Below are positions 1-37,930 of a stretch of DNA of 64,000 nucleotides, piece by piece. The stretch comes from Asterias rubens (taxonomy: Eukaryota): NCBI RefSeq assembly GCF_902459465.1, contig NC_047070.1, positions 12,276,001-12,340,000 of the forward strand, given 5' to 3'. Each line of letters begins with the position of its first letter. Position 1 is the stretch's first letter. Made by a program: the position numbers and the translations under genes. The notes beneath the pieces are model-generated. The model was given only the letters and a program-made list of their open reading frames with translations. It did no database searches and had not been told where the DNA came from.

Positions 1-27
1 TACCGGTAAGTAGAGTGAAGTAGACTC
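1..27 (-). mobile_element. Terminus of a DIRS-type element (left ITR end) extending out of the window
   Basis: 1-25 taccggtaagtagagtgaagtagac is identical to 5999-6023, the outer end of the DIRS ITR-like segment. Confidence 0.5.
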
Positions 28-1519
28 ATTGTTTTCACCATTAAGTCTTTGTTTGGACTAATTGACTGCAATGCCATAAAGTGTAACACTAAAATCAACT
101 ACCGCCATTTAGACTTGACCACACCTCACCATCACTATGCCAGAACTCAAGCTCTTAAACACATGCCAATTCATTCATTCCCTCAGTTAGGCATAATTAA
201 AAAAAACTTTTTATTGCCCTTTTGGCAAAAAAAAAAAAAAAAAGGGCCTACAACAGAGGAGAAAACAAAATCCAAACATTTTTGGATGATCCTATCCCCA
301 AATGTTTGCCCTAAATAATACTTTTTCCAATAAAACCATTTTCATGAATTAGTGATTAGCAGTTCCGGCGTTAAAGATCTTCGTTTGCAATAAAATCATC
401 GAGATTCAACGATCGGTAACAACCATCAGAACAATAATTGTCAATGAACTTTGCCCCGCATCACGCACGCCCTCAATCGGCGAAAGTTATACATGTTTGA
501 ATATGCTTCAAGGCCGAACATTGCACCATTCTACAGGTGTGCGGCACACTGCGTGGCAATTCTTTCTCAGTTCGTGAATGTGCGTTTTGTGTTGGAGTAT
601 ATCAACGGCCAATCACAGCGTGCGGGCTGTTTATGCACTTTGCATGCAGTGGGTATTTCCATGGTGTGGGCGACAGATCGAACCATGTGGACGAGTGCAT
701 ATCGTCGCGTTTTAACATGATGGGCCAGAGTGTGACAAGGATCGGGCTCCCCACCATGAATGGCATGTGCGTGGATTGTGTGGAATTTTGGTGTCAGATG
801 ATCTGAGCTGCCTGGGTGGTGCATGAAGATGTAGCAAGTTCTGGATGTATGTTGGTGCCGTTATGTGGTGTGGTCTCTCTTGAATATAATTTGGAAGTGA
901 GTGAAAATGTGGAAGTGAAGCTTATTAGGGCACAAGTGTAAACAGGTTAATTAGCATAAATAAATGATTCTAAGACGAACTGAATTGGCCGAAGGATAAA
1001 AAGTAAGGTAAGTACATGTAGTACGGTATGTTTACAAATGACAGAAAATAGTACATTTAAATCTGGTTTTGGGTTGAGAGAAAAGTGATATTTGGTATTA
1101 ACAGGCTTTAAAAAATTAAAATAATTTACTTTAAAATGTACCAAGTGGTATCCTGTGGTTTATTATATTTTAAAACTCTGTACTACATACCCAAATATTT
1201 GGAAGATAAATGCTTTTGGACTGTACAACTGTTAAGAACAATGAACTAAAAGAAAATTATTTTAACTAACTGAACTTTTATGAGAAATTGCTTTATGATC
1301 AGATTCACAACCCTCCCAACCTGCAAACAGGGCATGACAAAGAACTGCTCCAAAATCTATCAAAGACCTCTAAAAAACGAACCTGGGGTACACATAAGAT
1401 TTTGCTGCTTAAAATGGTGTTACGTTGTGCCAGAAACATTTCTTTAAAAGAGAATTAAAAGCGGCTTAAACTTTGCAGGTTTTTTTTGTGACTTTTCCTT
1501 TTGGAGCACATTCAATATT

Positions 1520-1860
1520 CCCCCCCCCCCCCACAATAGTGTGGGACGAGTCTATGATTGATACTCAACCTAAATAGCCACTACTTATGCATATTTCATA
1601 GCCGACAGGCTAATTCGCTAGGAAAATTGACAACCAGAGGGCGCCCTCTCGCGCCCACCCAGCATGCTACGCAGTAGCTCTGCCACATACGTCCTTCTTT
1701 TTCTCATCTTACAGGTAACCCTGAACACGAGCCGTTAGTGGGGAAGGAGGGCGGGAAGGCTATTTGGGTATTAATCATTGACTCGTCCCACACTATTGTG
1801 GGGGGGGGGGGGAGTCTATTTCATTCACTTACCCAAATAGCCACTACTTATGCATAGAAT
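1520..1860 (-). repeat. DIRS right ITR plus internal complementary region (ICR)
   Basis: ccccacaatagtgtgggacgagtc (~1528-1553) is inverted at ~1780-1805. aaatagccactacttatgcata is a direct repeat at ~1572 and ~1835, as expected for the DIRS1 ICR/rITR layout. Confidence 0.8.
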
Positions 1861-1989
1861 AGCACCGTAACATGGAGGTTGGGTAGGCGAGGCGCCTTTA
1901 TGAAAAATCAGACATTAGTCGGCAAGTACCCAAGACTTAAAACTACAAACTGATAGGAAGTGCTTATAAGAATCGGAGGACATTTTTGG

Positions 1990-3194
1990 GGCTCACCTCA
2001 AGCTCTGTCCAGGCGGTGCCTGGACAGGTCACTTGCTTGGGGCTCTCTTCTGGGTTGAGATGCTGACAGCACTGCTCTCCCAAAAGCACCTTCGCTCTGG
2101 AGCACATCACGCAGATAGCAGTGGTGAATGAAGGTTGATGGACCCTTCCAGTAAGCTGCTTGTAAGATCTTTGCAAAGGAAATCCCCCTGAAAAACGCCC
2201 AGGATGTGGACACGGCACGGACGTCGTGTGCACGTATGGGTCCCTGACTGCCTGTATCCTTATCCGACAGCCAGTCGGGGTTTGCTGACTTTATTGCTGA
2301 TACAATCCACCGTTTGATTGTATCTTTGGAGGCTGGACCATGCTGGGGAGTAGTCGAGATAAAAAGTTGGTCGCAGGTCCCTCTAAGTGGCTTGGTACGT
2401 TCCAGATACCATTTGAGGGAGCGTATGGGGCACCAGAGCCTGTCTGATCAGACAGATGATATAGAGGCAATTTCAGGAATGAAGATATCAGGCCGGGTAA
2501 AAACTGCCGTCTGGTTCTTAGTAAGGAATGAAGCCTTGGGTACAAGGCGAACCCCTCCCGGTTCTCACCGGATGTGGCCCGGTTGGATCGTAAGTGCCTG
2601 GATTTCACATCCCCTCCAAGCTGAAGCTGCAGCTATGAGGAAGGCCAGCTCGACCGAAAGTTGCAACAGTGATGACCGGTGTGCCGGCTCATAGGGGACC
2701 GCTGCTAAGTTCTCTAGCACCCGCCCCAAGTCCCAGGATGGGACCAGCCTCTGTCTCGGGGGCCTTTCGTTAAACATGGCCCTAAGTATCTGTGTTAGCA
2801 CGGGGCTCGATGAGATTGTGGAGCCATCGGAGAACCCTACATGGACTGCCACAATGGCCGATCTGTAATTCTTAATTGTTGTCACCTTCAGTTGGGAATT
2901 AAAGAGGTGAACCAGAAAATCCGACACCATCGCTAAAGATGCAGTGGTCGGATCCACAGCGTGGTCGTCACACCACCGACTAAAATGTTGAAGTCGTTTG
3001 TCGTAAACCTTTTGTGTGGAGAGGCGACGCCCCTTCGCTGCAAGGGTCGCAGCCTCTTCAGAAAGACCAGCTGTAATGAGGGATCGTTTGACAGTGGCCA
3101 ACACGCTAGGTGGAGGTCTCCCGGCGCCGGATGTAGTAGTCGGGAGTGTGGTTGGTATAGGAGATCGTGTCGATCCGGGAGAAACAGGCCACAA
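1990..3194 (-). pseudogene. DIRS tyrosine recombinase (frameshifted)
   Basis: TQKVYDKRLQHFSRWC...TIKNYRSAI...SWDLGRVL...AFLIAAASAWRGCEIQAL, with C-terminal ILQAAYWKGPSTFIHHCYLRDV in another frame. Confidence 0.9.
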
Positions 3195-3269
3195 CGACTG
3201 CTCCTAGGAAGGTCGGAGACTGGGTTGGTATGAAACGGGATTTCTCTTCATTTATAATAAGCCTACAGC

Positions 3270-5676
3270 CCTCGTCACCTCGCAGGTGGTCTGCAGATAT
3301 TGGGCTGTTTCCTCTTCCGATCTGCCGACATCAGCCAGTCGCCAAGTACATATAGATGTCGGAAGGACGACGTGCGCATGCCAAAGCGTGGCGCTGAGTC
3401 CCTCTTCCCGACTGCCTCTTTCATTTTCCCTTGGGCTTTGTCTGCAAGGGAAATTTGGAAGGAGCTGTACCCCTATCGGCGGCAAGTCTATCTGACGCCG
3501 AGTCTGGTTGAACTGGGTTCGGAAAATATATATCGAAGTCCACCGTGGGGAATTGATAATAAGTCTCCGCCCACTTGGAGTAAGTATTTCCAAATGGTCG
3601 CCAACATAATGCCCTCGATAGGGTCACTGCAGACACGATCGAGTGGCATAGCTGGAAAATTATTTCCGCTCCGCAGAGTCGGGCCTGTCCTCCACTTGAA
3701 TGATTGTCGTTCAGCAGGAGGATCCTCAGATTTCTCGATGGGAAGGCCCGGCATCCGAGTCCTGTCCCGCTTGACAAGGCGCAATTTAGTTTCGGTAATT
3801 GACGGTAATTAACGCGTCCTTTTCCAGGGACGAGTAGCTAGCCGGACTCAAAAAAGGGTCGGAGGCACCCAGCAAAGGCGTGCCACCAAATGGCAGAGCT
3901 ATGCCCAAACCATGATGGTCCGACACGAAGGACCCCGAAGGGTGCAGGCTGATCCCCGGCGGGGATGGTGCTCTTGTACCCAAGTGCGTGACTGTCCATC
4001 CTGCCCCGCGCCACCCCACGTAAGATCGTGTGTGGTAGGTGCAGAGCAGTGGCTGTGAGGGGAGGCCGGTGCACAGCTAACCAAGCCCTTGGGGCCTCCC
4101 TGACCTGAGTGCACACAGTCGTGACCGGAATGGTCGGGCTGGATGTACAGGCCCGGGGGGCAAAATTCTTAACCTCATGTCGGCCGGAAATGTGGCCATG
4201 AGGGTCTGAAAAGCTGTCATGAAATCGTCTCGGGATACTGACTCGTTATCCCGGAGATGCCTGACCCTGTGGGAGCCAAGCAAAAAAAATTGTCGGAGCT
4301 TGACGGAAAATGTCGAGCGTCTTTTTTTTTATTTAATTTTTTTATTTAATTTTATTTGTTTATAATTATTTCACCTGGGTGAACAGGGCGCCCGAACAAC
4401 GGGTAAACCCGAAGACGAGGGCGGGCCCAGTGAGCGGGGTTTGCCGGGGGACTCCCAGCTACCCTGCTCCATGTAAACAATCCTTCAACCCATTACATTG
4501 CAAGTGCCCCACAGCCCATGGCGTGGGCGGGTGTTAATCCGGTAAGGCGGCCCAGCAAAAGCCCGTCAACAACCGTTGTGGGGGAACCCACATGGTCAGA
4601 AAGGGCCGGGTAAGCCGAGCCGTGTGGAGAGGGGGATGCCCTCCGGCTGCAGCAATCCCCGAGGCCGGGTCGAGAGAGGGCACGGTGCGCTCCGGATTGG
4701 AGCCACCCCTAGCCCTACTTCTTCTAGTTACCGCCCCAGCACCAGCTTTCTTTGTCTTGCTTGGGCGTTTAACCTTCGATTGGGTAGACCATGGAGGAAT
4801 AATTAGGAATTAATCTTTCTCCATGGGTAGACCCACGCACACTGCTGACCAGAGAAGTGGAACGGAAGTCTCCCCTCCTTGGGAGGTCCGCCAGCCGGCG
4901 CCGCCAACTGAGGCTACGGGGGCCGGTTGAATGGCTTGCCTTTCTGGGAGCCAGACATAGACGCGTCAGATCGCTTGACGGTGAATGTCGGGCGTGACGG
5001 TCTTTCTTGGTATTCTGTCTCTTGTGCAAATATCTGTCCCGGGTCGAATCTGAGGCCCTCTCGGAGGAAATCTGGGCGACCGGGACGCCCGAGTAACGGG
5101 TAAAACCCGAAAAGGAGGGCGGGCCCTATGAGCGGGGTGTGCCAGGGGACTCCCAGCTACCCGACTCCACGTCACCAATCCTTCTACGTATCGCAAGCGC
5201 ACCACCGCCTATGGCGTGTGTCGATCGGGTAGGGTGGCCTCGCAAAGGCCCATCAACGACCGTCGTGGGGGAACCCACGTGGTCGGCGAGGGCCGGGTTC
5301 ACTGAGCCGTGTGGAGGGGGGGAATCCCTCCGGCTGCAGTGACCCCGAGGCTCGAGAGAGGGCGCGGTGCGCTCCGGAACGGAGTTACCTTTAGCCCTAC
5401 CTCTCTTGGTCACCGCACCGGTACTAGTTTTCTTGGACTTGCCGGGGCGCTTGACCTTAGATTGGGTGGACCCACGTACGCTGATCGAAGAGGGGGAGCG
5501 GGAAGGCTCCCTCCTTGGTCAGTGGATCCCCCAGCCGACGCAGCCGACTGAGGCTGCGGGGGCCGGTTGAAGGGCGAGCCCAGCATTGGAGTGTCACCGG
5601 CGCAGCCCTCCGAGGGCTCCGACTGTCCCGGGGGAATGGACGTACCCCCAGTTCCAACAGTCGGAGCCCTCCCCAA
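3270..5676 (-). pseudogene. DIRS gag-like ORF1 (degenerate, internally duplicated)
   Basis: YYQFPTVDFDIYF...RFGMRTSS aligns with YYQFPQVDFEEFF...RFGMRSTS of the gag at 26520-27479. The N-terminus GTSIPPGQSEPSEGCAGDT matches 34328-34488. Confidence 0.8.
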
Positions 5677-8600
5677 TTTCCATTGAACTACTCATTTATA
5701 ACGATCTTTATCTAAAACACTTCAACTAAACAACAACTCTACTATCTTCAATCTCAGTCTTTATTTTAAATCTCAGCCATAAAGGTAAGGTGTTTTTATT
5801 TCATTCTAAAAACGGTAAACTGTTGGACACAGAATTATTTACGTCCTCACCCAACTGTGGCTAAGAGAAAAGAGGACGACTTCGTGGCAAGCATGTCATG
5901 GGACATTGTGGGTAGGACGGTGGAGGGCGCTATTGTGTGTAAAGTCTTAGCAATATTGCCTGGCGGCATAGGGAATATGCAAATTAGTAATTCGACTCTA
6001 CCGGTAAGTAGAGTGAAGTAGACCATAACGTTTTTATAACGTTGTATTTACTTCATTGTGTAACAAGACCAAACTGCAACCTTTTGGCAACGTTGTAAAT
6101 TAGTTGACAATACGTGTTTGCTGGGATCGCGTTACAAAGGTGATATTTTAAAAACTTTTTAATACTTTTTCTTCACTAAAATATTTATTATTATTAATGG
6201 AACCTGTTATATTTTATTTAGAAATATTTACTTTAGAAATGTTTTCTTTTTTATCCAAAAAATATAAGTTTACTTTTGAGTTATGGACATTTTTGTGAGT
6301 TCATCATGGCGCCTTTTGTTTTGCATCATGTTTTGCACGCACACAGCACTGAGTCATGAGCTAAATATAGTTAAATATCAGCTGACCGCGCTGTCGTTCA
6401 ACTGAAAGCAGGCCTCGACCTCTACAGCGGCCACCAGCGGCCATTGCCGCGATGCCCCAGCCAATTGCCGTGAAGCCCTTTTAAAAATCACGTACCTTAC
6501 GGCCACTTGGCCGTCGTGCCCTTTTCCATTGATTCCATAACATTATTTATTCGAAAAAGTTATTTAATGTTAACATTGTGACCCATTTAATTTATATGGA
6601 GGTAAAATTCGGAGCGTACGATCCCGCACACTAGTTTTTCACAATGCTGCTTCTGTGCAATAAAAAATGTGTCGAGAATGTGGCATGGTAACCATATCAA
6701 ACGTAGTTGAGCTGTTTACTACTAAAAACGCAGCACCAGACTACTCCAATGTATAAACTCGCTACATGTCCCTACATTAAATTACGCATTTTCGCACTGA
6801 TTTTGTCCATTGAGATCTGTATTTGTAGCGGATGGGGCGGGGGAGGCACGCGGCCGGGGGCTGGATACTATGTTTTTCCCCTGGCTATTTCGCTGGTGTC
6901 CAAGGCTTGTACTGGATTAATGTTTGTGACCCACCACTACCAGTGATCTGCCTGCCTTGCGACTTTGTTTTTCATTGCCAAACACATGTTTGTGTACACA
7001 CAAAAAGCGTGGAATTGTAAAACGTCAAACGGCAGAGCCCTAATTTGGCAATCATCATACTCCATCAAGTTCATTATTGATTAATCAGCATGCCATCCCC
7101 ACAAAAGATGCAAAAAATAAGCAGGAAGGCGAAAGGGCTAGAGTGGTAGCAAAGTGCCAACTTAGAAGCATTTTTTAGGGACAGCGTCAAAAATATTTTT
7201 ATTGGCGAGCCGCGGCCCGCCTTGAAGCGCCGAGGGTCGGCGGGCCGCGGCCCGTCAAACCTCGGCTCAGTGCGGCGCATAGAGTATCATGCATAACAAT
7301 GGACCATGATCATTGTCCTATTTTCTAAAGATTGCGGCAAGCCGCAGCGCGCCGCTTGCTAGCTGTGCAGATTAAAAAGCTTCTTTTCACCAATTCCCCC
7401 ACAGAGACGAGGGTCGTAGCAACCACAAACCAGTCCGTGTATGTATCTATGTGGATTGCGGCCGGCTGCGGCCCACCGCAAACAGTCGGCGCTTGCAATG
7501 TACAGTACTTCTATTCTCATTGAGAGATTGTTATTACATGGTGTTACCGCAAACTTTTCTATATCTTACTTCCACCATGCAAAGTTTCAAATCCTACTTA
7601 TTCTATATCTGCTACCCACATGCCTTTTTTCTAACCCCGAAGAACTGCCGTGGGCCAATTGGACAATTAGACCTAGGAACTCCACAGCCAATGGAAACAT
7701 TCGGTTTTACTCTTTGAAAGTTAGACGTTAAAGTCTGTGTCTGTTCGTTCTTCATTCTAGATAAATTTTTTTCATGTCAACATCAATCAATACAAAGTCA
7801 ACGAACAGACAGATCTGTGTACCTTTACTGTGTGGTACGGCAGGTACTACAACACGTCGTCGGGAAAACCCGCCGATCACTCATGATTCCCCGACACAAC
7901 ATACGGATTGTTCTCTCCCTCCGACCACCATAAATTGTACGATGATGTGAAATAATTACCTGTTTTGCCGAAGCATTATTTATTTAACTGTATTTGAATT
8001 TATGAATTGTTTGAAATCTACCTGTAAATTATGTATCAAGCTCGAAGTTCCGTTATATTTTTGTGTTGATTCCTCCGACATCCACATTTTGTGCATGATG
8101 TTTTTTTCCTTTGTGTTTCGCTGGTATTACACGTTGTCATTATTTTCAGTATCTTATTCACGCAAGTTGTTTCATCTGTGGGCAGGTGGGAACTCATAAC
8201 TTCCACCCAGCCGCCCGCCCAGCACAGATTTCTCCCCATAATAGATCAAAATAATGTCCACTGTGTCTTACCATGGAATTTATTCCTCCATGGTCTTACA
8301 TGTCCCAAATAATAAATGCATTGACCTCGGACACAAAGTCTGAAGATATGGAGTCTGAGAGGCCAATGTGTGAGCAGCGGCGTACAAAGCCGAAATGTAA
8401 TACAAGTTCTCGGTTTCAAGTTACAACTTGTATCTTTTTTATCTCGACGGCAGCTAGGGGCGGCACATAAAGGGAATTTTGTCACTGACTGTCTAGGGCT
8501 TGATTAGGCATTCTGTTTTTTTCCCCTTTTAGTAGATGGTCTCGTTTAATGGAGCAATCCTTTTGTGGGCCTTTGATTACTTTTATTACATAAATGTTTT

Positions 8601-9555
8601 TTCCCTATAAACTGGGTGTTTTGCACCAGTACATACTGTTTTCTACTGCCTGTACCGCCCCTGTAGCCCCCACCCCCAACGAATATATATATATATATAA
8701 ATAAATAAAAATATCTGACTTGGTAGGAAAAACGCATTGACTACATTGCAATACTTTCGAAAATTAAGTGTAGTTTATTTCATCGAAATGCACCAACAAA
8801 TAAAATCAATTGCGAATCTTATAAATGAGTAACCACAAGTCATAGGCAATGAATACTATTGCAAATTACTCAAAATAATAGAGGTTGGTAGTATACAAAA
8901 TTGTGAGAAACTGCTCCCACGGAAATAACGTAGTTTTCGCAGGTTAGTTATTTTATGCATATGTTGAGATGCACCAAGTGAGAAGACTGGTCATTGACAA
9001 ATACCAATAGTGTCAAGTGTATTTAAAAAAAAACTAACAGCAAACCAATCATAAGTATGATTTTCGTTAAAAACTTCAACCTGTTCATAAATCCAATATC
9101 AACAAATTATAAATATGAGAAAACATGCGCTCTCATAATGAAAATAATTGAAAATGATGACACTACGAATTATAATATCAGATTTAAAAAGTACCGACAG
9201 CGCCTTTATATATCATGAATGAAATCTGACAAAGAAATGTTGTACAGTTGTAATAAATTAAAAGACACAACCAGCACTTCAACCTCTCCCTCCCTACCAA
9301 CATTTTTTCGAATGCAAAATCAAGTTAAAAAACATATAGGAATCGATTGCAAAAATTGCTATGAAAACTGCTGTAAACAAACAGAACTTTGGTAGTATAA
9401 AGCAGATTTGCTTTATTTTGCGTTTAAATAAAATCCACAACAATCCGATGGAGCATTTAAAATGAACCACAAACAACAAATAGTTCAACCCTACTCGTTC
9501 ATTTATGACAGGGATATGTTAAGATAAATATCTGGTATACCAAAAATGGAATAGA

Positions 9556-10489
9556 TTATCTACGAGGATGAACCTTCTTCCGGTGGTCATCCTTGTCTTT
9601 CTTACTTGTAAATACATATTTACAACCAGCTTCACACCTTCCCAGGTTCTTGTCCTGGAACAAAGGCATGTGTTCACAGGGCAAGTCCCTGGGTTGGTGC
9701 AAAGCTTCAAGAAATGTCAAGAAATGACCAGGATGACTGGAAGAAGGTTTCGGGGTTGGGAAATTCCGTACAAACTGCAGCATTTCATCATTTACAGGTG
9801 GATTGGACACGCAGTGTTGACATGCTGGATCGGTGCATTTAGCAAACAAGACCATGCCAATGCGCCAATCCATATGTCGCATGACGAATTTAAATTCGTC
9901 ATACACTGCGCGGTTCTCTCGCAACCTTGTAGCTGATGACGACACTGCAGCATGTACCTGTCCAAAATCTGAGAATGGTCCTTCATCTGACCCGCTTGGT
10001 ATGGCAGACAAAGTAATACGCTTATCCGCATATTTGGTATTCTCCCAGTAGTGGTTGATAAGGGCCATAGCGTTGTTGAAAACAGTTTTCTCCTTGGCAA
10101 CGCGATCATCAGTACTCAGTTGTCTTTGCTGGCAAGGTGGGAGTTCGCAAGGCAGATTGGCGGGGATTGACACTGACGTCAAAGCCCGTGTGCAAGGAGC
10201 CCACAAACGCTCGACCGGGTTGAGGGCTGAGTGTCCAGGACAATAGCTGGTTACAAGTAGGGCATCCAGCTTGCACTGCTTGAAGAGGCGGCCATAGTAC
10301 ATCTCGTTAACCACATGATTAACGTTGAAGTCTGGGCCACCATCAGCAAGCAGCACAAGCAATGAATGCCCATCTTGCACCTGTTGTTCAACATCCAACG
10401 CGTTGATGATGTTGTTCATGTGTGATGAAATGTGGCAGGGATTATGTGGGCTCCTGTTGACAATGGTGGCCTGACCTCTCACAGGGAGT
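9556..10489 (-). CDS. Zator-type transposase, last exon (second D, E, C-terminal zinc finger)
   Basis: LADGGPDFNVNH...YCPGHSALNPVERLW with 43 residues between D and E. C-terminal CEAGC...HRKKVH. Acceptor ctgcag at 10490-10495. The exon is open to the stop. Confidence 0.88.
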
Positions 10490-11349
10490 CTGCAGAAAAG
10501 GGAAACAAAGTTTGTATAGGGTTTAATATTACAAGCAAAGACTAGACTCTCAAAATCCGGCAATACTTTGGTTTTACAATTATCAGTGCATTTTTTAAAT
10601 GTACACTGTAAAAAAAGGCCGTAAGTTACACGGACTGTCGAGTCCAAATATAGTGGTGCATGTTTACAGAGATGCCAAGTCCAGAGGCCAGCTATGCGTG
10701 AGATTTTTCAAAGCTCACCCCCCCCCCCCCCCCCCCCCCCGGAAAAAACAAATTGCCAGTTTTAGAAGACCTTTAGAAATCGCCGCCCAACTTTTTTGTT
10801 TTTTTTGGTTAATAACATTGCATAAATTTAATTGTGGACCAAAAAGTGATGTTGATGGTTAATGTGGAGGTACCATTGTGTCAGATTATTTCCTTCCAAA
10901 ATAAAAATAAATGTCCAAAATCCTCCGCTCACTTCTTCTGCCTGTTTTGTGTCTTCACTAGTGGAGCGCATTTAACAAATTTGCTTAACGAATCGGGAAA
11001 AACTTGTGCGCAATAAGAGTTTTGCGCTTTGCCGAATTTTAACTTAACCTGCTGGGAGAGCAAAAGCGTGCGCAATCTGCAAATTTGCGCTCTGTTTGTA
11101 CAGCAGCTCAAGTTGATGACTCTGATAAACTGCGTGCAATCTGAAGATTGTGCAAACATTGTAGATTGCGTTTTTATACACACGAGCGCAATTTGGCAAT
11201 GCATTGTCGTTAATTTTTAACGACCTCTTCTTTTTATCCTGAAATTTGTTTTGTTGCCTACAACAATTCTTTATTTTTCACCACATTGAACATGAAGAAA
11301 AAACTTACGTTGAACCAAAGTTGGCTCTGCAAGCAATAAATAAACTTAC

Positions 11350-11750
11350 TCAAACTGTTGTCGCCCAAGATGATCCACTGTCAGCGAGGATGGGGATATG
11401 GGGTCTAGCTTCAGATACCCACAAGGCACTATGTAGTATCCAGGGGTGGGGAAATCGTGGTCAGAGAGGTTGGGCTTGTCCATTGCGGTTGATTTGAATT
11501 CTTCTGTCTACTGCTGCTACTTGACTCCCTAACTTTATTTTGTTCTTATTGTCTACAGAGTAGATCATGGCCGTTGCAGGAAACTTCGCCGCCAACTCGA
11601 GCGCATACCGCACTCGTGCAGAAAAGAAATGGCTATTGGCGTCATCTTTCCTCACCGAGTTTTCCTTGTTCGGGATCCTGGCGTCAATTAGGCCTTGGTA
11701 CATGGATGCAGAGCGGAAGGTCTTGTTGGGCGGCTATGAATATTGGAGTC
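11350..11750 (-). pseudogene. Zator-type transposase, preceding exon (first catalytic D), one frameshift
   Basis: YQGLIDARIP...YSVDNKNKIKLG...AVDRR, then PNLSDHDFPTPGYYIVPCGY. Donor GTAAGT at 11349 splices in frame to 10489 (QQFE/LPVRGQ). Confidence 0.85.
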
Positions 11751-11835
11751 TAACATTTTAAGAAGGAATGGACGTTTGACTTTCGTTCATAAACAATGTT
11801 TTTAATTATGGTTATTTTTTATTTTTTTTTTACAG

Positions 11836-12870
11836 GACAAAAGCGAAGTCTTAATGAGAGCAGCGATGAAAGCGACGAGGACATTCCACTTAACGAGCTG
11901 AGGAAAAAGCGAGTATCACTTGGTTCTCCTCATCCAACTGTGGTGGACTTTGTTCCCCCATCATCTCCGCCTGCTGCCCCAAGCCATCCAACTACGCCTG
12001 CCTCAAGCCGCCCGACTCTGCCTGCCTTCAGCCATCCTATTCAGCCTGCCCCAAGCCATCCCACGCCTGCATCCAGACTCGACTCTGCCTGCCCCCACCA
12101 GCCATCCTATTCAGCCTACTCCAAGACGTCCAACCCCGCCTGCCAGAGGGCGTTCAGCTCCGCCTGCCCCCACCCGTACAGCTCCGCCATCATCTCCGCC
12201 TGCTGCCCTAGCTGCCCCAAGCCGTCCTATTCCGCCTGCTTCCAATTCCAGCCAATCAACTCCGCCTGCCTCCAGCCGCCCGACTCTGCCTGCCCCCACC
12301 AGCCATCCTACATCCGCCACCCGCCAAGCTCCGCCTGCCTCCATCAACCAGTCATGTCAAACAGAACAAGTTGGCGAATGCTGTGGCAGTATAGCCCGTC
12401 AGAACAGAGATATGCTATCAGTTTTGCTCGTGGAGGTTCAGATGCTACGGGAGCAGTTGGGATTAAAGACGGCTGGGAAAGGAGTCCCAAACTACGTCGA
12501 GGTCGATGGTGGAGCAGATGGGGACATCTTAATCGGACATCCGGACATAGCCGTCTATGTGATGTCTAAAACTGTATATTTAGACATTTTTGAGAAGGTC
12601 GACAATCCAAAGGACTTCGTCTTGAAGTTGGTGTCCCGCCTGTTGACGGAAGACGAACTCGCCATCCACAACTACCATGGTGGTGATGTTCTGAGCAAGG
12701 GACGGGGAGTTCAAAAAATGGCGCTAAAAAGAAATCCTACTTTTCAGGCCATAGCGGCCCAGGCTGACTTACAGTGGCCGGTTGCAACGGCACGGGACAG
12801 TTACACCAAAACACTGAAGGATGGATTGAACGGCAAGTGTCGAAAATTAGCTACGAAACTAGGCCTTTAA
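11836..12870 (+). pseudogene. Transposon-borne BEN-domain protein, terminal exon (acidic patch, Pro-rich repeats, coiled coil, BEN); one frameshift in the repeats
   Basis: Acceptor tttacag at 11835. SSDESDEDIPLNELRKK, then DFVLKLVSRLLTEDELAIHNYHG...KMALKRNPTFQAI...LKDGLNGKCRKL, which follows the BEN consensus pattern. Confidence 0.75.
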
Positions 12871-12929
12871 GTATTAACTTTAACTACTTAAATGGCCTTC
12901 ATCAAGTTATATTTATTTATTTAAACTGT

Positions 12930-12984
12930 TGCCTCTGAAGAAGGTCCGGATTGGATCGAAAGCTAAGGCCATCTACCCTATTCA
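12930..12984 (+). ncRNA. Minimal type I hammerhead ribozyme cassette (Penelope-derived) with 17-bp TSD
   Basis: GCCT-CTGAAGA-A-GGTCC-ggatt-GGATC-GAAA-GC-TA/AGGC. Flanked by ttatttatttaaactgt at 12913-12929 and 12985-13001. Confidence 0.8.
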
Positions 12985-13888
12985 TTATTTATTTAAACTG
13001 TCTGATATTTCGGTATAAGTTTTTGATAACTTTATTTGCATCTACCTTAGTTTTGGAATGTTTGACCTACGTGACGTTTGGTAGCAAATGAACTCTCAAA
13101 TTAAGTTATAAATCTACTCTATTGCTCATGTTAACACTCATTTTATGTTAAAAGGTCAATCGTAATAATTATCAAGTTCGAAACACAAGTTTTTTTTTAT
13201 TTTGTCGTATTTTTTCCCAATGCATTTGTTATTTTGTATTCACATCTACTTGCCTATTTATCACCCGTTTCATTTTAAAAGGTCACTCGTGTCAAGTTAT
13301 AAATACTAGTTTTATATTTAGGTAGGTTCTGTCACATAAATAACTGTTAATGAAAAAAACTTGTTTGGCCTTCTTATTTATCAAATAATTTAATATTAAT
13401 AACTTATTGTAATTCTCTTATATTTATTTGTTTTTGTTTGATATTTTGATACGAATTTTCGATAGTTTTCTATTATTTGCATGTACTTAATTTGGGAATG
13501 TTTAAACTTACGTGACGTTTGGCAGCAAATAAACTCTCAAAATAATACCTGTTGAATCACCGGTGTCAGAATCCTTCTATAATGCTTTAATTAATGTTGG
13601 TAAAAGAATCTAGTAGCGATTCACTTGATTTCAAGGGAGAAACAAAAAATAACAATGAAACAACTTGTAGATTTATATACACACAAATGGTACAAAGCGC
13701 TAGGGAAATGCAACCAAAAACCCAAAAGAGAATGAGTGAATAGTAAGCAAACATACAACAAGTGTAGAAAATATCAGAAGAAAATTGTAGAAAATATCAG
13801 TTTAGTTTAAAAGATATACCCAAAATTGCCGTCCTCATCAAACAATGCACACATGTGACTAGACTGTGAGTGTTTTCAAACCATCATG

Positions 13889-14040
13889 GGTGCGTTCGAT
13901 CAGCTTCCCTGGGTCGGCACCGATTTGGCGTGTTTTATTTTTTCCAGGACGAACGTGGGGTAATTATGTGCCCACCTTCGTCTTGAAAAAAAAAATACGC
14001 CACATCGGGGTCGACCAATGGAAGCTAAATCGAACGCACC
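13889..14040. mobile_element. 152-bp MITE inside the Zator element
   Basis: TIR GGTGCGTTCGAT at both ends, CATG on both flanks, internally near-palindromic. Confidence 0.75.
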
Positions 14041-15640
14041 CATGTCTGGTTTTTCTGTAGTACGTCGTCCGGAATAATTCAGTACTACACATGCGTTAGA
14101 AGAATGCCAAAACATTAAAGAGGGTCCTAAATTGGTCCTAGAATGTATTCCAAAATAATTTGAGAGAACAAGAATGGTGTGTTTCATGCTTTCATCCACT
14201 GTTCTGTTGTCAGTTTACAATCACGGCCGGCCGCAGTGCGCCGCACTTCACTTCTTCTCCGGGGGGATTAAACATACGTTCAACAACAAAATGTCTTTTT
14301 ATTAAGAACAAATATTTGTTTATTGATTGTTCTTGTTTTTACAAAGTTATAAAACAAACAATTTCACATTCATAACACCGGAGTATTGTCGCGTACTTAA
14401 ACAAAATTTTAAGGAAAAATAATGGTAAGTTTTATCCTTGCTCTATGGTTTGTCATAGTGAAGGGTTTCATCCATCCGTCTTCCATAGTTACAGGATTCA
14501 GTCTACTGTGACCAGTTTTACAACCTCGGCCGGCCGCAGCACGCCGCGTTCTTCTCCGTCCATTGTTAAGACACACAATAGGCCAAATTTAATGAGTTGC
14601 AAACCCCTCGGCGGCGCCGCAGTCAAAATCTCCTCAGAGGGATGGGTCGGCGCCGCCGCACAGAGCCGCAGCGGGCCGCGGCCCGCCGATAAAAATGTTT
14701 TTGACGCTGTCCCTTAATTAGGTGCGTTTGTTTACTTTTTTTATAGTAATTATTTAGCGCAGTCTAGCATGGCATAAACGCCGGCATGCAAAATACAACT
14801 TACAAGTTTAGCTAAATGCTAGGTCAATTATTTTGTGCTAAGGGGTTGAGGGTTCGTTTTTAATTTTCTTAATCATATTTATATAAAAAAAGAAGGGAAA
14901 AAAAGAAATAAATATTTTTCCAAATCATCGGATTTAGCTGAGCCTCCGGGTTGTTGGTGTATGATGGGGGTTGTTGGCGTGGGGTGGGTTGGGCTCGTTT
15001 GTCTCGCAGAGTTGGGGTAGTGGTGAGCCAGAGACTAATTGATCTTTTTTCTTCAGATTAACACGCAGGGAATTATTTTTCTTAATATTTTTTCTGTATG
15101 ATTTTTTCAACAATTCTTTGTTCTGGAGCAACGATTTGTTTTCAGATGACCAGAAGGGAGTTTAATTAAGTCGATGAACAAGGGTTTTGGGGTAAGTTAA
15201 TTACTGGGGTAATCGTTTGCAATTCGAGCGCTGCAAAAAAACTGTAAATAATTCAGAAACAAATATTTTTAAACTTTTATTCAATTTCAGCGACAATGAA
15301 ATAAATATGGGTTGGAAAGTTGACCACCATCTTGAAATCAGTGGAAAGTATTTTAACATAATCATCAACAAATAAAGGTTTGAAAATGGCCTTGGTGCCC
15401 TTTCAGTTGGCCCCTTTCTTTTTGAGAGCTTTTGAGGCCAAGTGGCCTTGCCCCTCTGAAGCTAAAGGTTGAGGCCTGTGAAAGGACATAATATTTCATT
15501 CCATTTAACAGGGATATTCTTTTTCCCCTGATGAGGATATGACTGGAAAAGAATATTCATATCAACTATGACCCCTGACCCATCTCCAGCCCAGCCCCCC
15601 CCCCCCCCCCATAAAAAAAAAGATATACAAATAGGCCTAC

Positions 15641-17257: not shown

Positions 17258-19678
17258 CCGATGTCATTACCGGGAATACCCAGGTGTCAAAGGAGAAGCA
17301 TAGACTTGGTCATATTAAAATTTAAATTATTTGTGTATCAAAGAGTTACAGATTTCAAGTGGGGCTTGATATTAGAGACAAAATCAATCAATGGGTTGGC
17401 CTCGTTGGATGGAATTTGAGTCGGTGGTCTGACTTGTCCTTTTGGCTGGTGTAAACATATTTACAACAGAAGACTTGGCATCTACCGATGCCTTTCTCAT
17501 GGAACCTAGGTAGACGCTCGCACGGAAGTTCACGTGCAATGCCAGTGCCTCAATTAGTGACATGAAGTGCCCTGGGAAGTGTGTCGATGGCTTGGGTGAT
17601 GGGAAGTTCTTCACAGCGTCAAGCATCTCTGCAGCTTTCGCGGGATTCGCAGTGCAGTGGAGGCAGTCGGTAGGGCTAACGCACTTTGAGAAAATGGACA
17701 TTCCAATGCGGCGATCCAGATGTTTACAAGCAAACTTGTATTCATCGTAGGTTGGCTTGTTTGCTTTGAGATGTGTTGCTGAGCTGCTGATGGTCTTGTG
17801 GATAGCTCGGTACTCTGTCGACGGATATGGCTGCTCTGGTTCCCCACTCTTCTTTACTACTGTGCATATGGGCCTCCCAGAAAATGTTGTGTAGGCCCAG
17901 TATCTCTGTTGGATGGAGTCCATTGCAGCATTGAAAACGTTATGTTCTTTAGCTATCTTCTCGTCTAACGACAAACCCGCTTGCGCGCAAGGCGGACGGG
18001 TCTCGTCTTCCAGTACGGCCGGTAGATAGACAGACTTTAGAGCTTGGGTGCATGGTGACCATAGTCGTTCAACAGGATTCAGCGTAGAATCTCCCGGACA
18101 ATAGGATGTCACAACCAATGCATCCAGGTTGCAACAGTCTGCCATAATAAAACTCGTTGACTGCGTGGTTGACGCTGAAGTCTGCTCCACCATCGACAAG
18201 TAAGACTAGTTAAAGCTAGCCCCTTTGCCACCTGCTCCTTCAGACCAAGCTCACCAATCATGTCATTCATGTGTGTAGCTATGCTGCACGGTGAGTGCGG
18301 ACTTCGCAAGATGATTGTCGCCTGATGCTTTTGAGGAAGCCTGTATAAAAGAGAATACGAAAAATATGAAGCAACGTACCATGTTCAAGCAATGAGCGGT
18401 CTATTCTAGCAAAATTTAGCGATGCATGTGGGACTGACGAATATCATTGTTTTGAAATTAGCCTGCCCCCCCTCCACCCCGATATTTTAGCTTATTATTC
18501 ACTACAGTTGCCAAACAAACTATGGCGCCACCGGGGGTTTTTTTTTTTTGGCTTTGACTTGTCAAACTCTTCTACTTAAAAGTGGAGGCTCTTTGATGGA
18601 AATTATTTGTCGAGTGTACTCATTTCTAATGGAGTTCTTATAACGTGTTTAAAAACAATCATCTAGCCTCCCGGTAAATTGATGTAAAATAGAGTTTTAT
18701 TTCAAAATCTTTTAGATCAATATTAGAAAGAAGACGCATATTTTTCTAACGAAAAATAATAGATGTTAAATTTGCATCGGGATGAAGAATATTTATTTTG
18801 GTTTTTACCCATAGACGTACACCGATTTGTGTTAGCGCTGTCTTGATGAAACTATCAAAGAAACAGCGCAGGCGCTTGTCTTTTGAGTGAAGCCAATTAT
18901 AACAAACTGAAACGAAATGAATAACAAACTGTGGACTGCAACCAGAGGCTTAGCACCAGCGGCTTGGTCTTTGAGTGAAGCAAAAGTGTAACAAACTGAA
19001 CAAATGTGTAAACAAACTGAAGAGGGTTAAGATTAGAGTAATTTAATCTCAACAGGAGCGTCAATCATTCTCTCAACCCAGCTGGAAAGTGTCTGGGGCT
19101 TACATTAAATCTACGATTAAATAAAAGGAATGACTAGATTTTTTCTTACTGTCAGCAAAACCTGCCCGCTTCTTTTTTTCCATTTACTCTTGACTTGGAT
19201 CACAATACTTACACGAATCGGTCTCTTCCAAGATCCTCCTTCGTCATATCGGGGGATGGCTGCCACTTGAGATAACCGGATGGCACAATGTTATAGCTTG
19301 GAGTTACCAAGTCATGTCATGGTCATGCTAGTTGGGGGCATCTGTAGTTGGGACAAACTTTCTCACTGTGATGCGACGATCAACTGCAAAAGTCTGTTGA
19401 CCCACTTTCACTTTGTTCTTGTTGTCGCTGGAGTATACCACCGCAACCTTGTTGAATTTGGAGGCTAGTTCAAGGGCATAACGAACCCTGGCAGAGTAGA
19501 AATGGCTGTTGTCGTTGACCTTTCTAGTTGAGTTTTCCTTGGCCGGAACTCGAGCGTCAATCAGCCCCTTGTATTCGGACGCTTTCTTGAGAACTTATTT
19601 GGAGGTTTCATCCACCGTGCAATGGTTCCGAGGCCTGCAGGGAAACAACATGTGTATTTATTATTATTATTGATTTTG

Positions 19679-19741
19679 GGGTTGAACAAAGAATTGACTA
19701 GAGTGGGATTCGAACCAACGACCTCCGGATTAACGTGCCGG
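19679..19741 (-). mobile_element. tRNA-derived SINE fragment in a transposase intron
   Basis: B-box GGTTCGAATCCC followed by a non-tRNA tail (actctagtcaattctttgttcaacc). Confidence 0.7.
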
Positions 19742-19959
19742 TTGTTAATATTAACAGAGACATACTGTATTTATACCACCTCAAAAGGTTGCGAACTTTT
19801 TATAAATTTTATTTTCCTAAAAAACAAAAGACATTTCATGGCCAGAGTATTTAAGCATATACTTAAATTTCACCAGTTTACAACGCAACACAGTCTAGCT
19901 ATTTCCCCCTATAATAAGGCCTGCATTTTAATTTTGCAAAACCCCACACAAAAATTAGT

Positions 19960-20292
19960 GAGACAACTCGACCATTCGGACAACTCGTCTGACGTTTTTT
20001 TTTTTAACCGTCGGACAACTCGACTAAGAAGCAAGACAAGTCGACGGATGACCGTGACGGCGGGGCCTGGAATTTGGGGGGGGGGGGGGGGGGGGGGCGT
20101 GACGTACCGTACTGTACAGACTTATTGTTTTCATTGTTTTTGCTAATAAATTGTGTATCATATAAAATATCAACTGTACATGTGACTCTGATGATTGCAA
20201 TCGTTAGGCCTTAGTGTGTTCAATTAAATAAAATAATGTAAATATTCTTTTAATAGTCGAGTTATCCGAATGGTCGAGTTGTCCGACAACCC
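19960..20292. mobile_element. MITE in a transposase intron
   Basis: Inverted repeat gacaactcgaccattcggaYaactcg at both ends. Confidence 0.6.
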
Positions 20293-21180
20293 ATATGTGT
20301 AGTTTTTTTTTTCTCAATCTATGTATGAGTTTGGGTGGTTCTAAAGAGAACCGTTGGTTTCAGTTCAAAGTATCGATCAGTATGATCTGATCATCTTTTG
20401 GAGAAAGAACTCCACATTTTTAGGTGTAGAAAAGAATATCTGCCAAAAATTCTACTATGCAACACACGACACAATCATCATAATTATAAAATTTACTTAT
20501 CTGTACCTATGTTTGGACGGTTCTCCTGCAGACCTGGGAGAGTATGTAACAGGTGGTGACCTGTTTCAGTAAACGACTTGGCCGATTCCACGATGTTTGG
20601 GTATAAACTGCGCAAAGCAGGTCGTCCCCGTGGTCGCTTGATGCTTGTAGCATTTGTAGGTTCTTGCTCTTTTGCCTTTGGCTTTGGACTCTAAGATTAA
20701 CCTTGGGCCGATTTTGCAAAGCTTCCATCACATCCTTACTCAACACGGTCGCCATGATTGTGTGGATAAATTGAGTTTGGGGTTGTTAATGTTAGTAATC
20801 CTTATCACCATGGAGTCCATGCTATCCCTAAACTATAGCACTATAGAGAAAAAGCACAGCATACACTGTAGGTTACAACACCTTTTACGTGACTTTTCTT
20901 TGTTAAAGTTCCAGTGTTTTAACATTAACAATAATGTGGTAAAGCTTCCATCTGGGCACTACAGATGTACCTTCAGCCAAACAAAAGAGTACCGGCCCCT
21001 TACCACGGTGAAGATCAAACATGCACCGTCACCCATTCAACTAGATGTTTTCTAATAATAGACTGTATTCAAAGAAAATGATGCAGATCGCTTCACACGT
21101 AGGACCCTTGAAAGTTTTACCTCATCCTTCTGCAAGGTTTCAAGAGTACAAGACGTCTTTTTACAAATCTTTGCATGATC

Positions 21181-22317
21181 ATGGCCGTCAGTAAAGTAAC
21201 AATTAGATGGCTGAATAGATGGCAAGATGTTGAAGAAGTTGTTTCTAGGAGCAGGGTGAAAACCCGTGATCCACTTGAGATTGGCATGGAAGTTCAGGTG
21301 AAATACAAGTCCAATCAATTCAAGGCAGCAATTGTCAAAATACATGAAAAAAGTAATACAATATCGGTTATGCTGATTTATTATTTATTGATTATAGCCG
21401 AATTACAGCGTCAACGTTTCTTAACAAATGCAATAAAAATTCATCTGAAAGCAGGACGTAGAGTGTGTCAACATCGATAGTATATTATACTTTAGACACC
21501 CCGTTACATAGCTTGTTGCCCCATAATCACACTTGGTTGTTATAGAAAGAAGCCGTAATACTAGTTCAAGTACAACATCCTGCAATGGTATAATTGAATT
21601 CCATGTAAACAAATATAGAACTAATATTTAATCATTAAAACTTAAGTAAATGATATAGACCTGGTTTTTGTAACAGCTAAACTTAAAAAAACAAAAACAT
21701 TTTTGTTTAAACATATTTTGAGAATATGTTTACTTTTGAAAGTTTTTTCTTCTTCAAAATATTAACAGCACACACCTAAATTCCTAGGGTGAGTCTTGAC
21801 TTAAAATGTTAAGAACTATAAAACCGTCTCACTCTGTCCTTTTGTGGAGTCGGACTATACATACTTAAAGCTGATAGTTAAGTTTTAATCGGTAATTCCC
21901 TTTGAAATTCCTGATGTTCATTACTGTTGATTTCTTTTTCTGTTTCAGAGAGGCCACTTAGCGAGGATAGTGATTCTGAAGACGACATGCCACTTGCTCT
22001 TATTAAAAGGCCTGCAGTTATGTCTGTCCTTGATGAAGCAGCCCTTCCTGCAACCCCTCATCAGCAGCCGACCGAAGTTGTTGCAGATCCCGCAACCGCT
22101 CATCACCGGCCACCGACCGAAGAAGCCGAACCCGCAACCGATCATCACCAGCCACCGACTGAACCCGAAGTCGTTGCTGAACCCGCAACCCCTCATCACC
22201 AGCCACCGACCGAACCCGAAGTCATTGCAGACCCCACAACCCATAATAACCAGCCACCGACAGAACCCAAAGTCGTTGCTGAACCCGCAACCCCTCATCA
22301 CCAGCCACCGACCAAAC
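21181..22317 (+). CDS. Accessory gene of the second Zator-type element, exons 1-2 (small beta-barrel-like domain, acidic patch, Pro/His repeats); BEN exon not found
   Basis: Exon 21181-21352 (MAVSKVTIRWLN...EVQVKYKSNQFKAAIVKIHEK) splices in phase 1 to 21949 (KRPLSEDSDSEDDMPLALIKR), which is homologous to the exon start at 11836. Confidence 0.65.
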
Positions 22318-23684: not shown

Positions 23685-24700
23685 CTAGAACCGTCCTCCC
23701 CGCTCTGCCCTCTGTCCGGAGTACATCCTCAAATAACAGTCTGTGAATGTATTTGGGGTCTTCCAGCAGGCTGCCTGTGTAATATCACTCAAAGAAACAT
23801 CTTTAAAAAATGCCCATGATGTGGAGGCTGCCCGAATTTTGTGGACGTTAACCCTCTCCGACGTTGGCAGGTTCGCGTCTGAGCGTATCGCTGCGACGAG
23901 CCATCGAGTAATCGTGTCCCGGGACGCCGGGCCATGCGGCGGCGTCAACGTAATGAACAACTGTGGGTGGTTACGCAGCGGTTCCGTTCGGCTGACATAC
24001 CACTTAAGTGCCCTGACTGGGAACCATAGCTTGTCTTTCCGGACCGACGAGTGGGACTTAATGTCTGGCGGCAAAAACGTATCAGACTGGTACTTGGTCA
24101 GAAAACCCGTCGCGGGTATCAGACGAACCCAACTTGGTTCCCACCGGATGTGGCCTGGCTCGGTCGACAGGGAGTGAAGCTCACTGCGACGCCTCGACGT
24201 AGCCACGGCTAACAAGAAAGTCAATTTAATGGATAGTTGCAACAGCGTTGCGCTAGCCATTGGTTCATAAGGCGGTCCCATGCAGGTCCCATGCAGGTAC
24301 CAGCCTCCGTACCGGAGGCCGGGACACAAACATCCCCTTAAGCAGCTGGCCAAGAGCCCGACTGTTGGAGACGGAGGACCCATCCGGAAACCCATTGTGA
24401 ACGGCCGAAATTGCTGACCGGTAGTTCTTAATCTTGAGATTGGCCTCAAAAAGGTAGACCAAGAAATCTGCTACCTCCCCTACATTAGTATTGGGGGGGA
24501 TGTAGAGACCTCTGCCTGCACCGTCGGTAAAAATGTCGTAGCCTGCTGTCATACACCTTTCTGGTGGATGCCCGCCGGCTACATGCTGCAATTTCCGCAG
24601 CTCGTCGTGAAAGGCCTGCTGCGCAGAGTGACTGCGTGACAGCACCCAGCACGTCAGGTGGAGATGTTGGGGGGCTGGGTGCAGTAGGCCCGAGCTGGGT
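23685..24700 (-). pseudogene. DIRS tyrosine recombinase
   Basis: STRKVYDSRLRHF...KIKNYRSAIS...LLAVATSRRRSELHSL...HKIRAASTSWAF...AACWKTPNTFTDCYL; frameshifted. Confidence 0.9.
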
Positions 24701-37600: not shown

Positions 37601-37930
37601 GGGACAGCGCCAAAAATATTTTTATCGGCAGGCCGCCGAGGGGTTAGCAACCCATTAAATTTGGCCTATTGAGTGTCTTATCAGCTGGTGACAATAGACG
37701 GAGAAGAAGCACGGCGCACTGCGGCCGGCCGAGATTGTAAACTGCAGTGGACTGAATCATGAAACTGTATAGAAGGGATGGATGAATAGAGCAAGGCTTG
37801 GTCCTTGCACTATGATTAAATTGACCATTCTTGTTCCCTAAGAGTGTGTTAATTACTGCAAGATTTCGAACTATAAAAACGGTGCTATGAATGTGAAACT
37901 GTTCCGTTTAGAATTTTGTAAAGGATCCAT
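37601..37930. mobile_element. Solitary Zator end (BEN-side terminus, inverted relative to 14340-14713)
   Basis: TAA|GGGACAGCGCCAAAAATATTTTTATCGGC, followed by subterminal sequence matching the reverse complement of 14340-14620. Confidence 0.8.

Follow-up and report, generated by a model that had tools for sequence, protein, structure and literature searches.

The window analysed here is a stretch of 64,000 nucleotides (nt) from the sea star Asterias rubens (RefSeq assembly GCF_902459465.1, contig NC_047070.1, positions 12,276,001 to 12,340,000 of the forward strand), and positions below are counted from its first letter unless another genome is named. Between 7178 and 14713 lies a transposable element (element 1) in which the remains of a spliced transposase gene on the minus strand stand head to head with the large exon of a second gene (gene 2) on the plus strand, and a diverged copy of the same pair (copy 2) is found at 17409-22317. 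We consider it likely that element 1 is a dead copy of a Zator cut-and-paste DNA transposon and that its family carries, besides the transposase, a gene for a protein predicted to combine a Tudor-like barrel, a coiled coil, and a BEN domain. An earlier note on this stretch, made from the sequence alone, had proposed terminal inverted repeats (TIRs) and a TTA target-site duplication (TSD) that enclose a spliced DD43E transposase and a plus-strand exon, and the repeat scan, the reading of the ends, and the splice sites all bear this out.

The borders of element 1 are defined by the top inverted pair of the whole window (pair I1 of the repeat scan), whose arms at 7174-7220 and 14671-14717 are 47 nt long and 91% complementary. 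The element proper spans 7178-14713, with TIRs of 43-47 nt and a left tip reading GGGACAGCGTCAAAAA that is mirrored at the right tip; a 25-nt pattern of these ends occurs 3 times in the window, compared to 0.00 expected from shuffles. The terminal features are the following:

7175-7177: left TSD, TTA, by direct sequence reading
7178-7220, plus strand: left TIR, starting GGGACAGCGTCAAAAA (repeat scan; shuffle expectation 0.00)
7205-7221, 7240-7256, 7337-7353, and 7461-7477: left subterminal GC-rich repeats of the GGCGGGCCGCGGCCCG type (repeat families D7 and D8)
14671-14713, minus strand: right TIR (repeat scan and end reading)
14714-14716: right TSD, TTA, by direct sequence reading

Copies related to GGCGGGCCGCGGCCCG are also present near the right end (14529-14545 and 14671-14687), and the 8-mer GCCGCAGC is found 4 times in the terminal 600 nt of element 1 and 0 times internally. 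Both ends contain the palindrome GCCGCGGC about 30 nt from the tip (at ~7208-7215 in the left TIR), extended at the right end to the perfect 12-mer GGGCCGCGGCCC. The related element of Patiria miniata described below has the palindrome GCACGCGTGC at the same distance of ~30 nt from its tips, and the end palindromes of both elements are concentrated in the terminal 600 nt, with 4-7 occurrences against 0-1 in the interior.

The transposase gene occupies the left half of the element:

9556-10489, minus strand: last exon (exon 3; coding 10489-9559, stop codon 9556-9558), 51-55% identical to the homologous proteins P0005 and P0006 over 313-315 amino acids (aa)
10490-11349, minus strand: intron with canonical splice sites (GTAAGT...CAG) that keeps the frame
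11350-11733, minus strand: middle exon (exon 2; 11733-11350) encoding the SVDNKNK and DHDF motifs, found as two tblastn pieces

Its catalytic residues are encoded at 11551-11553 (D of SVDNKNK), 10342-10344 (D of DGGPD), and 10210-10212 (E of NPVE), and the spacing of exactly 43 residues that separates the second D from the E defines a DD43E enzyme. The last exon also encodes C-terminal Cys/His motifs that resemble zinc fingers, and 11 of 40 diverse relatives match zf-C2H2. Twelve echinoderm homologues with E-values down to 6e-168 were found, and full-length relatives have 545-559 aa in three exons. Judging from these sequences, the transposase is a three-exon DD43E enzyme of ~550 aa with an N-terminal region of its own and putative C-terminal zinc fingers. 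The copy in element 1 breaks frame near 11480-11490, where the tblastn pieces 11733-11485 and 11480-11352 lie in different frames, in a region that forms one continuous exon in Lytechinus pictus. The intron is filled by unrelated high-copy repeats, with contig depth peaking at 10610-11214, and includes a C22 run (poly-C at 10716-10740). In databases, the protein is currently labelled "C2H2-type domain-containing protein".

The assignment to Zator, which the earlier note had also made, rests here on the catalytic core, on profile matches to ISAzo13 and PF07592, and on the TTA/TAA duplication. In a profile search of 1.84 billion representatives, the family comprised 2342 representative clusters at E<=1e-3, of which 276 remained at E<=1e-30. 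Among the 40 diverse members examined, 19 match NF033519 (ISAzo13; best E 2.1e-7) and 17 match PF07592 (best E 1.6e-7), and no other transposase model was matched by more than 2 of them. For the echinoderm proteins themselves, ISAzo13 is the sole transposase family matched in Pfam and NCBIfam, weakly (E 0.003-0.05) and over the stretch from the second D to the E. Majorek et al. 2014 group "A.28 Zator-1_HM" with PF07592 in their supplement and print its core sequence (PMC3985635). Four successive blocks are common to this core and to our family (P0006 and the window protein), namely FSxDxKxxVxxG, DHDF, RSxxHxSxxxSHLxD, and VDGGPDxN...LDxMxVxxxAPGxSA, the last of which has 18 of 42 residues identical to Zator-1_HM by an unscored count by eye. 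Zator has further been related to bacterial TP36 (PMC7386202), and for amphioxus Zator-1, inverted repeats of 33 bp and 3-bp duplications of TAA/TTA are published (PMC12905397). TTA likewise flanks the ends of the elements in the window, in Patiria, and in Ptychodera, with inverted repeats of 43-47, 47, and 85 nt, respectively. We take TP36 to be the same family as PF07592, with which the published grouping of Zator and PF07592 agrees, and Zator is a eukaryotic relative of the bacterial ISAzo13/"TP36" insertion sequences. On these sequence grounds, the transposase very probably belongs to the Zator superfamily, which reportedly goes back to Bao et al. 2009 with Zator-1_HM (Hydra) and Zator-1 (Branchiostoma) as reference elements. 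Element 1 thus has in common with Zator the DDE core blocks of Zator-1_HM, the kinship to TP36/ISAzo13/PF07592, the 3-bp TTA/TAA duplication, and TIRs of tens of nucleotides, but differs by an additional gene, also spliced, whose product is a Tudor-like/coiled-coil/BEN protein. Membership in Harbinger was considered for the TTA duplication and the presence of two genes and was rejected: neither the window protein nor 40 relatives match the Harbinger DDE model in Pfam (DDE_Tnp_4), and gene 2 shows no Pfam match to a Myb/SANT domain.

On the plus strand, gene 2 is represented in element 1 by its large exon, which is preceded by a polypyrimidine tract and begins by encoding SSDESDEDIPLNELRKKR:

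11836-12870, plus strand: large exon from the AG acceptor (11836) to the stop codon at 12868-12870 (open reading frame, homology, and structure model)
11859-11912, plus strand: acidic/basic patch
~11940-12350, plus strand: Pro-rich repeats
12076-12080, plus strand: frame change, with 2 nt fewer than in the sister repeat 12262-12316 and the repeat peptide SRPTLPAPTSHP read in two frames
~12355-12465, plus strand: coiled coil, a 37-residue helix
~12484-12867, plus strand: C-terminal globular domain with a predicted BEN fold

This order of acidic patch, Pro-rich repeats, coiled coil, and C-terminal domain is the one first described for the exon. An AlphaFold2 model of gene 2 has a predicted local distance difference test score (pLDDT) of 80 overall and of ~90 in the C-terminal domain. 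When it was searched against the PDB with Foldseek, the 13 best matches were all solved BEN domains (BANP, BEND6, Insensitive, NACC1, and Bsg25A, with BEND3 lower), at probabilities of 0.94-1.00, template-modelling (TM) scores by target of 0.54-0.75, and a root-mean-square deviation (rmsd) of 2.9 Å to BANP. Protein-language features point the same way: the three best Atlas hits are PF10523 BEN clusters (score 0.91-0.92, with 187 shared features at 0.92), and all ten best hits that have a family share BEN. At the sequence level, the Ptychodera orthologue matches PF10523 over profile positions 1-74 of 76 with E 6e-4 and 20.4 bits (cut-off 23.2), and a profile of four family sequences, trimmed and with Ptychodera added, found a BEND6 chain (E 0.001), BEND3 (E 0.059), and BANP (E 0.14) in the PDB. 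The first profile of four sequences, before trimming and the addition of Ptychodera, gave nothing in the PDB beyond coiled-coil noise and a chance match to an NDH subunit. Identity to the solved BEN domains is just 11-23%, and the window protein stays below the gathering score that marks formal PF10523 membership. We regard the BEN fold of the C-terminal domain as solidly predicted; the BEN-like domain of the earlier note holds as a fold, without a Pfam match for the window protein itself.

A search of 5.8 billion proteins returned only three clusters for gene 2, the fragments P0013 and P0014 and the full-length P0015 of 448 aa. Homologues were found in Patiria (E 1e-29), L. pictus (E 2e-23), and Ptychodera (E 6e-11), always near a transposase, and current labels either call them "proteoglycan 4-like" or fuse them to neighbouring host genes. 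A 210-nt contig from a marine metatranscriptome aligns to 12436-12645 with a single difference, too little to establish transcription.

Copy 2 preserves parts of both genes that element 1 does not have:

17409-20684, minus strand: transposase, diverged and with its frame broken several times (tblastn)
20502-20684, minus strand: N-terminal exon of this transposase, gone from element 1
21175-21352, plus strand: gene 2 exon 1, bounded by ATG and a phase-1 GT donor and beginning MIMAVSKVTIRWLNRW (57% identity to the Patiria exon, E 1e-18)
21949-22317, plus strand: start of gene 2 exon 2, with the acidic patch SEDSDSEDDMPLALIKR and 17-aa repeats of the PHHQPPTEPEVV type (repeat family D2; homology)

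The second exon starts (K)RPLSEDSDSEDDMPLALIKR and joins exon 1 in frame, and phase-1 GT..AG splicing of gene 2 is consistent in both window copies. This upstream exon, which is present in copy 2, Patiria, Lytechinus, and Ptychodera, had been missed when gene 2 was described as a single exon. The proposal that a paralogue repeats the head-to-head layout stands as far as the transposase and the plus-strand exon are concerned; no inverted repeats were detected around copy 2, and the rest of gene 2, including the BEN part, was not found downstream of 22317.

Exon 1 encodes 59 residues that are modelled with a pLDDT of 84.7 as a small all-beta barrel. Its best matches in the PDB are the Tudor domains of ARID4A and ARID4B (TM score 0.70-0.77, rmsd 1.8 Å, probability 1.0) and the hybrid Tudor domains of KDM4A/B; the short length of 59 residues accounts for the weak structural E-values (0.04). 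Pfam offers no more than hints (E 0.066 for 53BP1 Tudor and E 0.094 for a PWWP model), those from the Atlas go the same way, and the alignment shows conserved aromatic residues (W, W, Y, and F/Y). According to its model, exon 1 encodes a Tudor-like five-stranded barrel of the SH3-like kind. The complete product of gene 2 has ~450-500 aa and is built in the order of Tudor-like barrel (exon 1), acidic/basic patch, lineage-specific Pro-rich repeats, coiled coil, and BEN domain, as predicted from these models.

The comparison of the two copies also explains the state of element 1. Transposase exon 2 and the large exon of gene 2 are ~100 bp apart in element 1 but 2.3 kb apart in copy 2, which shows that one internal deletion took both first exons and the region between them:

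11734-11835: junction of the internal deletion of ~2.2 kb (no N-terminal match in element 1, present in copy 2)

In this respect the earlier description of element 1 has to be corrected, as both first exons are gone (~105 aa of the transposase, whose N-terminal match was found only in copy 2, and exon 1 of gene 2) and both genes have frame breaks. Element 1 is dead and could move only if the missing functions were supplied in trans.

The gene pair was also found within TIRs in the related genomes of Patiria miniata and Ptychodera flava, by a survey of the kind suggested in the earlier note. The loci are the following, with positions counted within each locus:

Patiria miniata (L002): perfect 47-nt repeats (GGCGAGGCGTCATAAATA...) with TTA; transposase on the plus strand at 9432-11723, gene 2 on the minus strand at 8327-5575, divergent
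Ptychodera flava (L007), an element of 13.5 kb: 85-nt repeats (93%, GGGAGGAAATCATAATC...) with TTA; transposase on the plus strand at 10001-12309, gene 2 on the minus strand at 17283-14509, convergent
Lytechinus pictus (L001): no ends found; transposase on the plus strand at 10001-13089, complete gene 2 (P0015, 448 aa, "proteoglycan 4-like") 7.4 kb downstream on the same strand
Patiria miniata, second locus (L003): no ends found; transposase on the plus strand at 10385-11885, a BEN piece 3.4 kb downstream on the same strand
Lytechinus variegatus (L004): no ends found; transposase on the plus strand at 10046-13905, a piece like exon 1 9.4 kb upstream
Holothuria (L005): no ends found; transposase present, no gene 2 within 10 kb
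Diadema, two loci (L006 and L008): no ends found; transposase present, no gene 2 within 10 kb

Both genes of the Ptychodera element are annotated as intact (transposase 599 aa, gene 2 492 aa) with the same five-part architecture, so that complete two-exon models of gene 2 are available from L. pictus and Ptychodera. The pair lies inside TIRs and TTA in two species of sea star and in one hemichordate, so its joint mobility is older than the divergence of these lineages. The pair is ancient and mobile as a unit, with an arrangement that is neither fixed nor kept in every relative. The divergent design proposed at first applies to the window and to Patiria, but the genes are convergent in Ptychodera and on the same strand in L. 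pictus.

Several sea-urchin transposases (L001, L004, and L006) have intact models of 549-559 aa with introns and no TIRs detected within 10 kb, and the sea-urchin loci may be old copies with decayed ends or domesticated genes. In the Patiria element L002 (JADOBP010000013.1), the large exon of gene 2 is host at 6164-7166 to a nested miniature element of ~1 kb, bounded by perfect 44-nt inverted repeats, that splits its continuous frame. This Patiria element sits between two sets of EGF/DSL exons, and an NCBI model of a 1570-residue EGF/DSL-domain protein (1-8327, minus strand) starts exactly at the ATG of gene 2 exon 1; it may represent a chimeric transcript or an annotation artefact.

Several results weigh against reading element 1 as a dead Zator copy from a two-gene family. 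Pfam gave no match to the BEN region of the window, tried as the whole frame and as two sub-ranges, even at E<=10, and the E-values of the Foldseek matches to BEN domains are modest (1.5e-3). The comparison with Zator-1_HM was judged by eye from a printed alignment, with no tree including Repbase Zator sequences behind it. Evidence from RNA is thin: over 9400-13000, contigs from two sequencing runs of uncertain RNA status give low-depth pieces on both genes and no canonical splice joints. No CpG palindrome comparable to those of the sea stars was seen when the terminal motifs of the Ptychodera TIRs were compared. Across genomes, 3 of the 10 transposase loci examined (Holothuria and the two of Diadema) lack a gene 2 within 10 kb, the sea-urchin and Holothuria loci yielded no inverted repeats, and gene order and orientation vary between divergent (sea stars), convergent (Ptychodera), and same-strand (L. 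pictus and Patiria L003). Moreover, the transposase has putative DNA-binding parts of its own, so a second DNA binder is not obviously needed. The earlier note had named three outcomes that would speak against its proposal, a protein without BEN fold, other full-length copies that lack gene 2, and a transposase outside Zator; all three were checked, and none of them is what we found.

Solved BEN domains bind short, often palindromic, CpG-containing sites. Gene 2 has the BEN fold in common with the BEN factors BANP, BEND3, BEND6, NACC1, and Drosophila Insensitive/Bsg25A, and the coiled coil ahead of its BEN domain suggests a dimer; it differs from them in that its protein is encoded within a mobile element and joined to a Tudor-like barrel and Pro-rich repeats. 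In the mechanism that we envisage, the coiled coil would dimerise the BEN domain, and the dimer would bind the CpG-rich palindromes ~30 nt inside both ends, with GCCGCGGC here and GCACGCGTGC in Patiria as candidate sites. The Tudor-like barrel would contact chromatin, and the gene 2 protein would serve as an accessory factor, bringing the transposase to the ends, controlling it there, or directing where insertion occurs, comparable to the Myb-like partner of Harbinger. Such a factor, with BEN on the ends and the Tudor-like barrel on chromatin gating the transposase, is put forward tentatively and by analogy, as a proposal that may well turn out otherwise. Gene 2 could also encode a repressor of the element's own promoter or interfere with host silencing, a role that we hold to be nearly as likely. 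It is unlikely that its protein is an obligatory second subunit bridging the CpG palindromes of the ends to marked chromatin, thereby setting the place and time of the element's moves, and that such genes have been a repeated source of animal "BEN-solo" regulators, in the way that the THAP and BED domains were domesticated from P and hAT elements.

Alternatively, gene 2 might be a passenger: an ancestral element would have picked up a chromatin gene of its host a single time, and the gene would since have been carried with no part in transposition, comparable to transduplicated genes in other DNA transposons. The variable position and orientation of gene 2 relative to the transposase, the transposase loci without it, and the N-terminal region and zinc fingers that the transposase has itself would all fit a passenger. 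Nevertheless, gene 2 lies inside TIRs in three species of two phyla with the same five-part architecture, and the conservation of its folded domains, next to linkers that vary freely, argues for selection on the protein. The search of 5.8 billion proteins, too, yielded nothing but the three clusters named above, with the full-length P0015 encoded 7.4 kb from a transposase gene. We therefore consider a mere passenger quite improbable.

It is very unlikely that the transposase stands outside Zator, in a eukaryotic superfamily of its own, as yet unnamed, with an independent origin from bacterial insertion sequences of the ISAzo13 type. In line with such an origin, the likeness to Zator-1_HM is unscored and not placed in a tree with Repbase elements, Pfam and NCBIfam link the transposase to the bacterial family alone, with weak scores where the echinoderm proteins are concerned (E 0.003-0.05), and support for Zator monophyly was just 73% in one broad published study. 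However, four consecutive blocks of the catalytic core, including DHDF and VDGGPD...APGxSA, match the printed Zator-1_HM sequence, and the 3-bp TTA/TAA duplication is the same as for Zator-1. That the plus-strand frame is no gene of the element at all, merely a chance reading frame or an exon of a surrounding host gene, can practically be dismissed: gene 2 of element 1 admittedly opens at a splice acceptor rather than a start codon and can be read to its end only with a shift of frame, and the Patiria model runs from the gene 2 ATG into a neighbouring EGF/DSL gene, but the homologues (E 1e-29, 2e-23, and 6e-11) are always near a transposase, the predicted folds are confident, and complete two-exon models exist in L. 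pictus and Ptychodera.

As a Zator family with a second gene, these elements are best compared functionally with PIF/Harbinger, with which element 1 shares a two-gene cut-and-paste design, a 3-bp TWA duplication, and a second protein that is a predicted DNA binder. The partner is a BEN and Tudor-like protein instead of a Myb/SANT protein, and the likeness is one of design, not of descent. The recently described KolobokP elements encode a DDE transposase together with a nuclease of the His-Me finger type, with the second protein sometimes on the opposite strand (PMC9587614). Like element 1, they form a lineage of a known superfamily with a second protein, but the superfamily is another one and the second protein is a nuclease, not a DNA or chromatin binder. 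A text search of the literature, with Repbase entries outside its range, found no paper joining Zator with a BEN domain, a Tudor domain, or a second open reading frame. The two-gene Zator design is probably undescribed, and only probably so because this negative rests on text searches without Repbase. To our knowledge, Zator is among the least studied cut-and-paste superfamilies, and we know of no active element that has been characterised biochemically. The family would provide a second example of a two-component design beside Harbinger, with a partner that combines a barrel resembling chromatin readers with a BEN domain, a class of domains that the literature searched has yet to connect with DNA transposons. 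The Ptychodera element, with both genes annotated as intact between 85-nt repeats, offers a system for studying the effects of an accessory binder on transposition, and such elements suggest a possible origin, by a testable route, for many lineage-specific animal BEN genes.

Two further features of the window concern relatives or neighbours of these elements:

23685-27950, minus strand: GC-rich (58%) retroelement with long open reading frames, directly downstream of the gene 2 fragment of copy 2
37601-37922, plus strand: TAA and then GGGACAGCGCCAAAAA, the solo end of a third element related to these (third occurrence of the 25-nt end pattern)

The solo end resembles the right subterminal region of element 1 in reverse over ~320 nt and points rightwards; no partner end and no coding part of this third element were found in the window. 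Pfam matches of the retroelement are weak (RVT_1 at E 5e-4 and RVT_3, which is RNase H-like, at E 0.002). Copy 2 may have been truncated by it, and we can only guess that the retroelement is DIRS-like.

The right non-coding part of element 1 contains direct repeats at 12985-13104 and 13424-13545 (77%) and an imperfect palindrome of 175 nt at 13878-14052 (79% self-complementary). Just past the stop codon of gene 2, a very high-copy short repeat is inserted at 12909-13001, where contig depth reaches ~360,000 in a DNA-type run compared to ~100-700 nearby; it is flanked by direct repeats of the ATTTATTTAAACTGT type and carries CTGAAGA...CGAAAGC. A hammerhead ribozyme was considered at 12913-13001 and rejected, as Rfam gave no match to one at the gathering score or at E<=1 and the sole hit was a chance match to mir-217 (E 0.36). 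Homopolymer runs of C/G, 16-22 nt in length, are found at 10716-10740, 15595-15611, and 20076-20097 and are also present in the Lytechinus loci.

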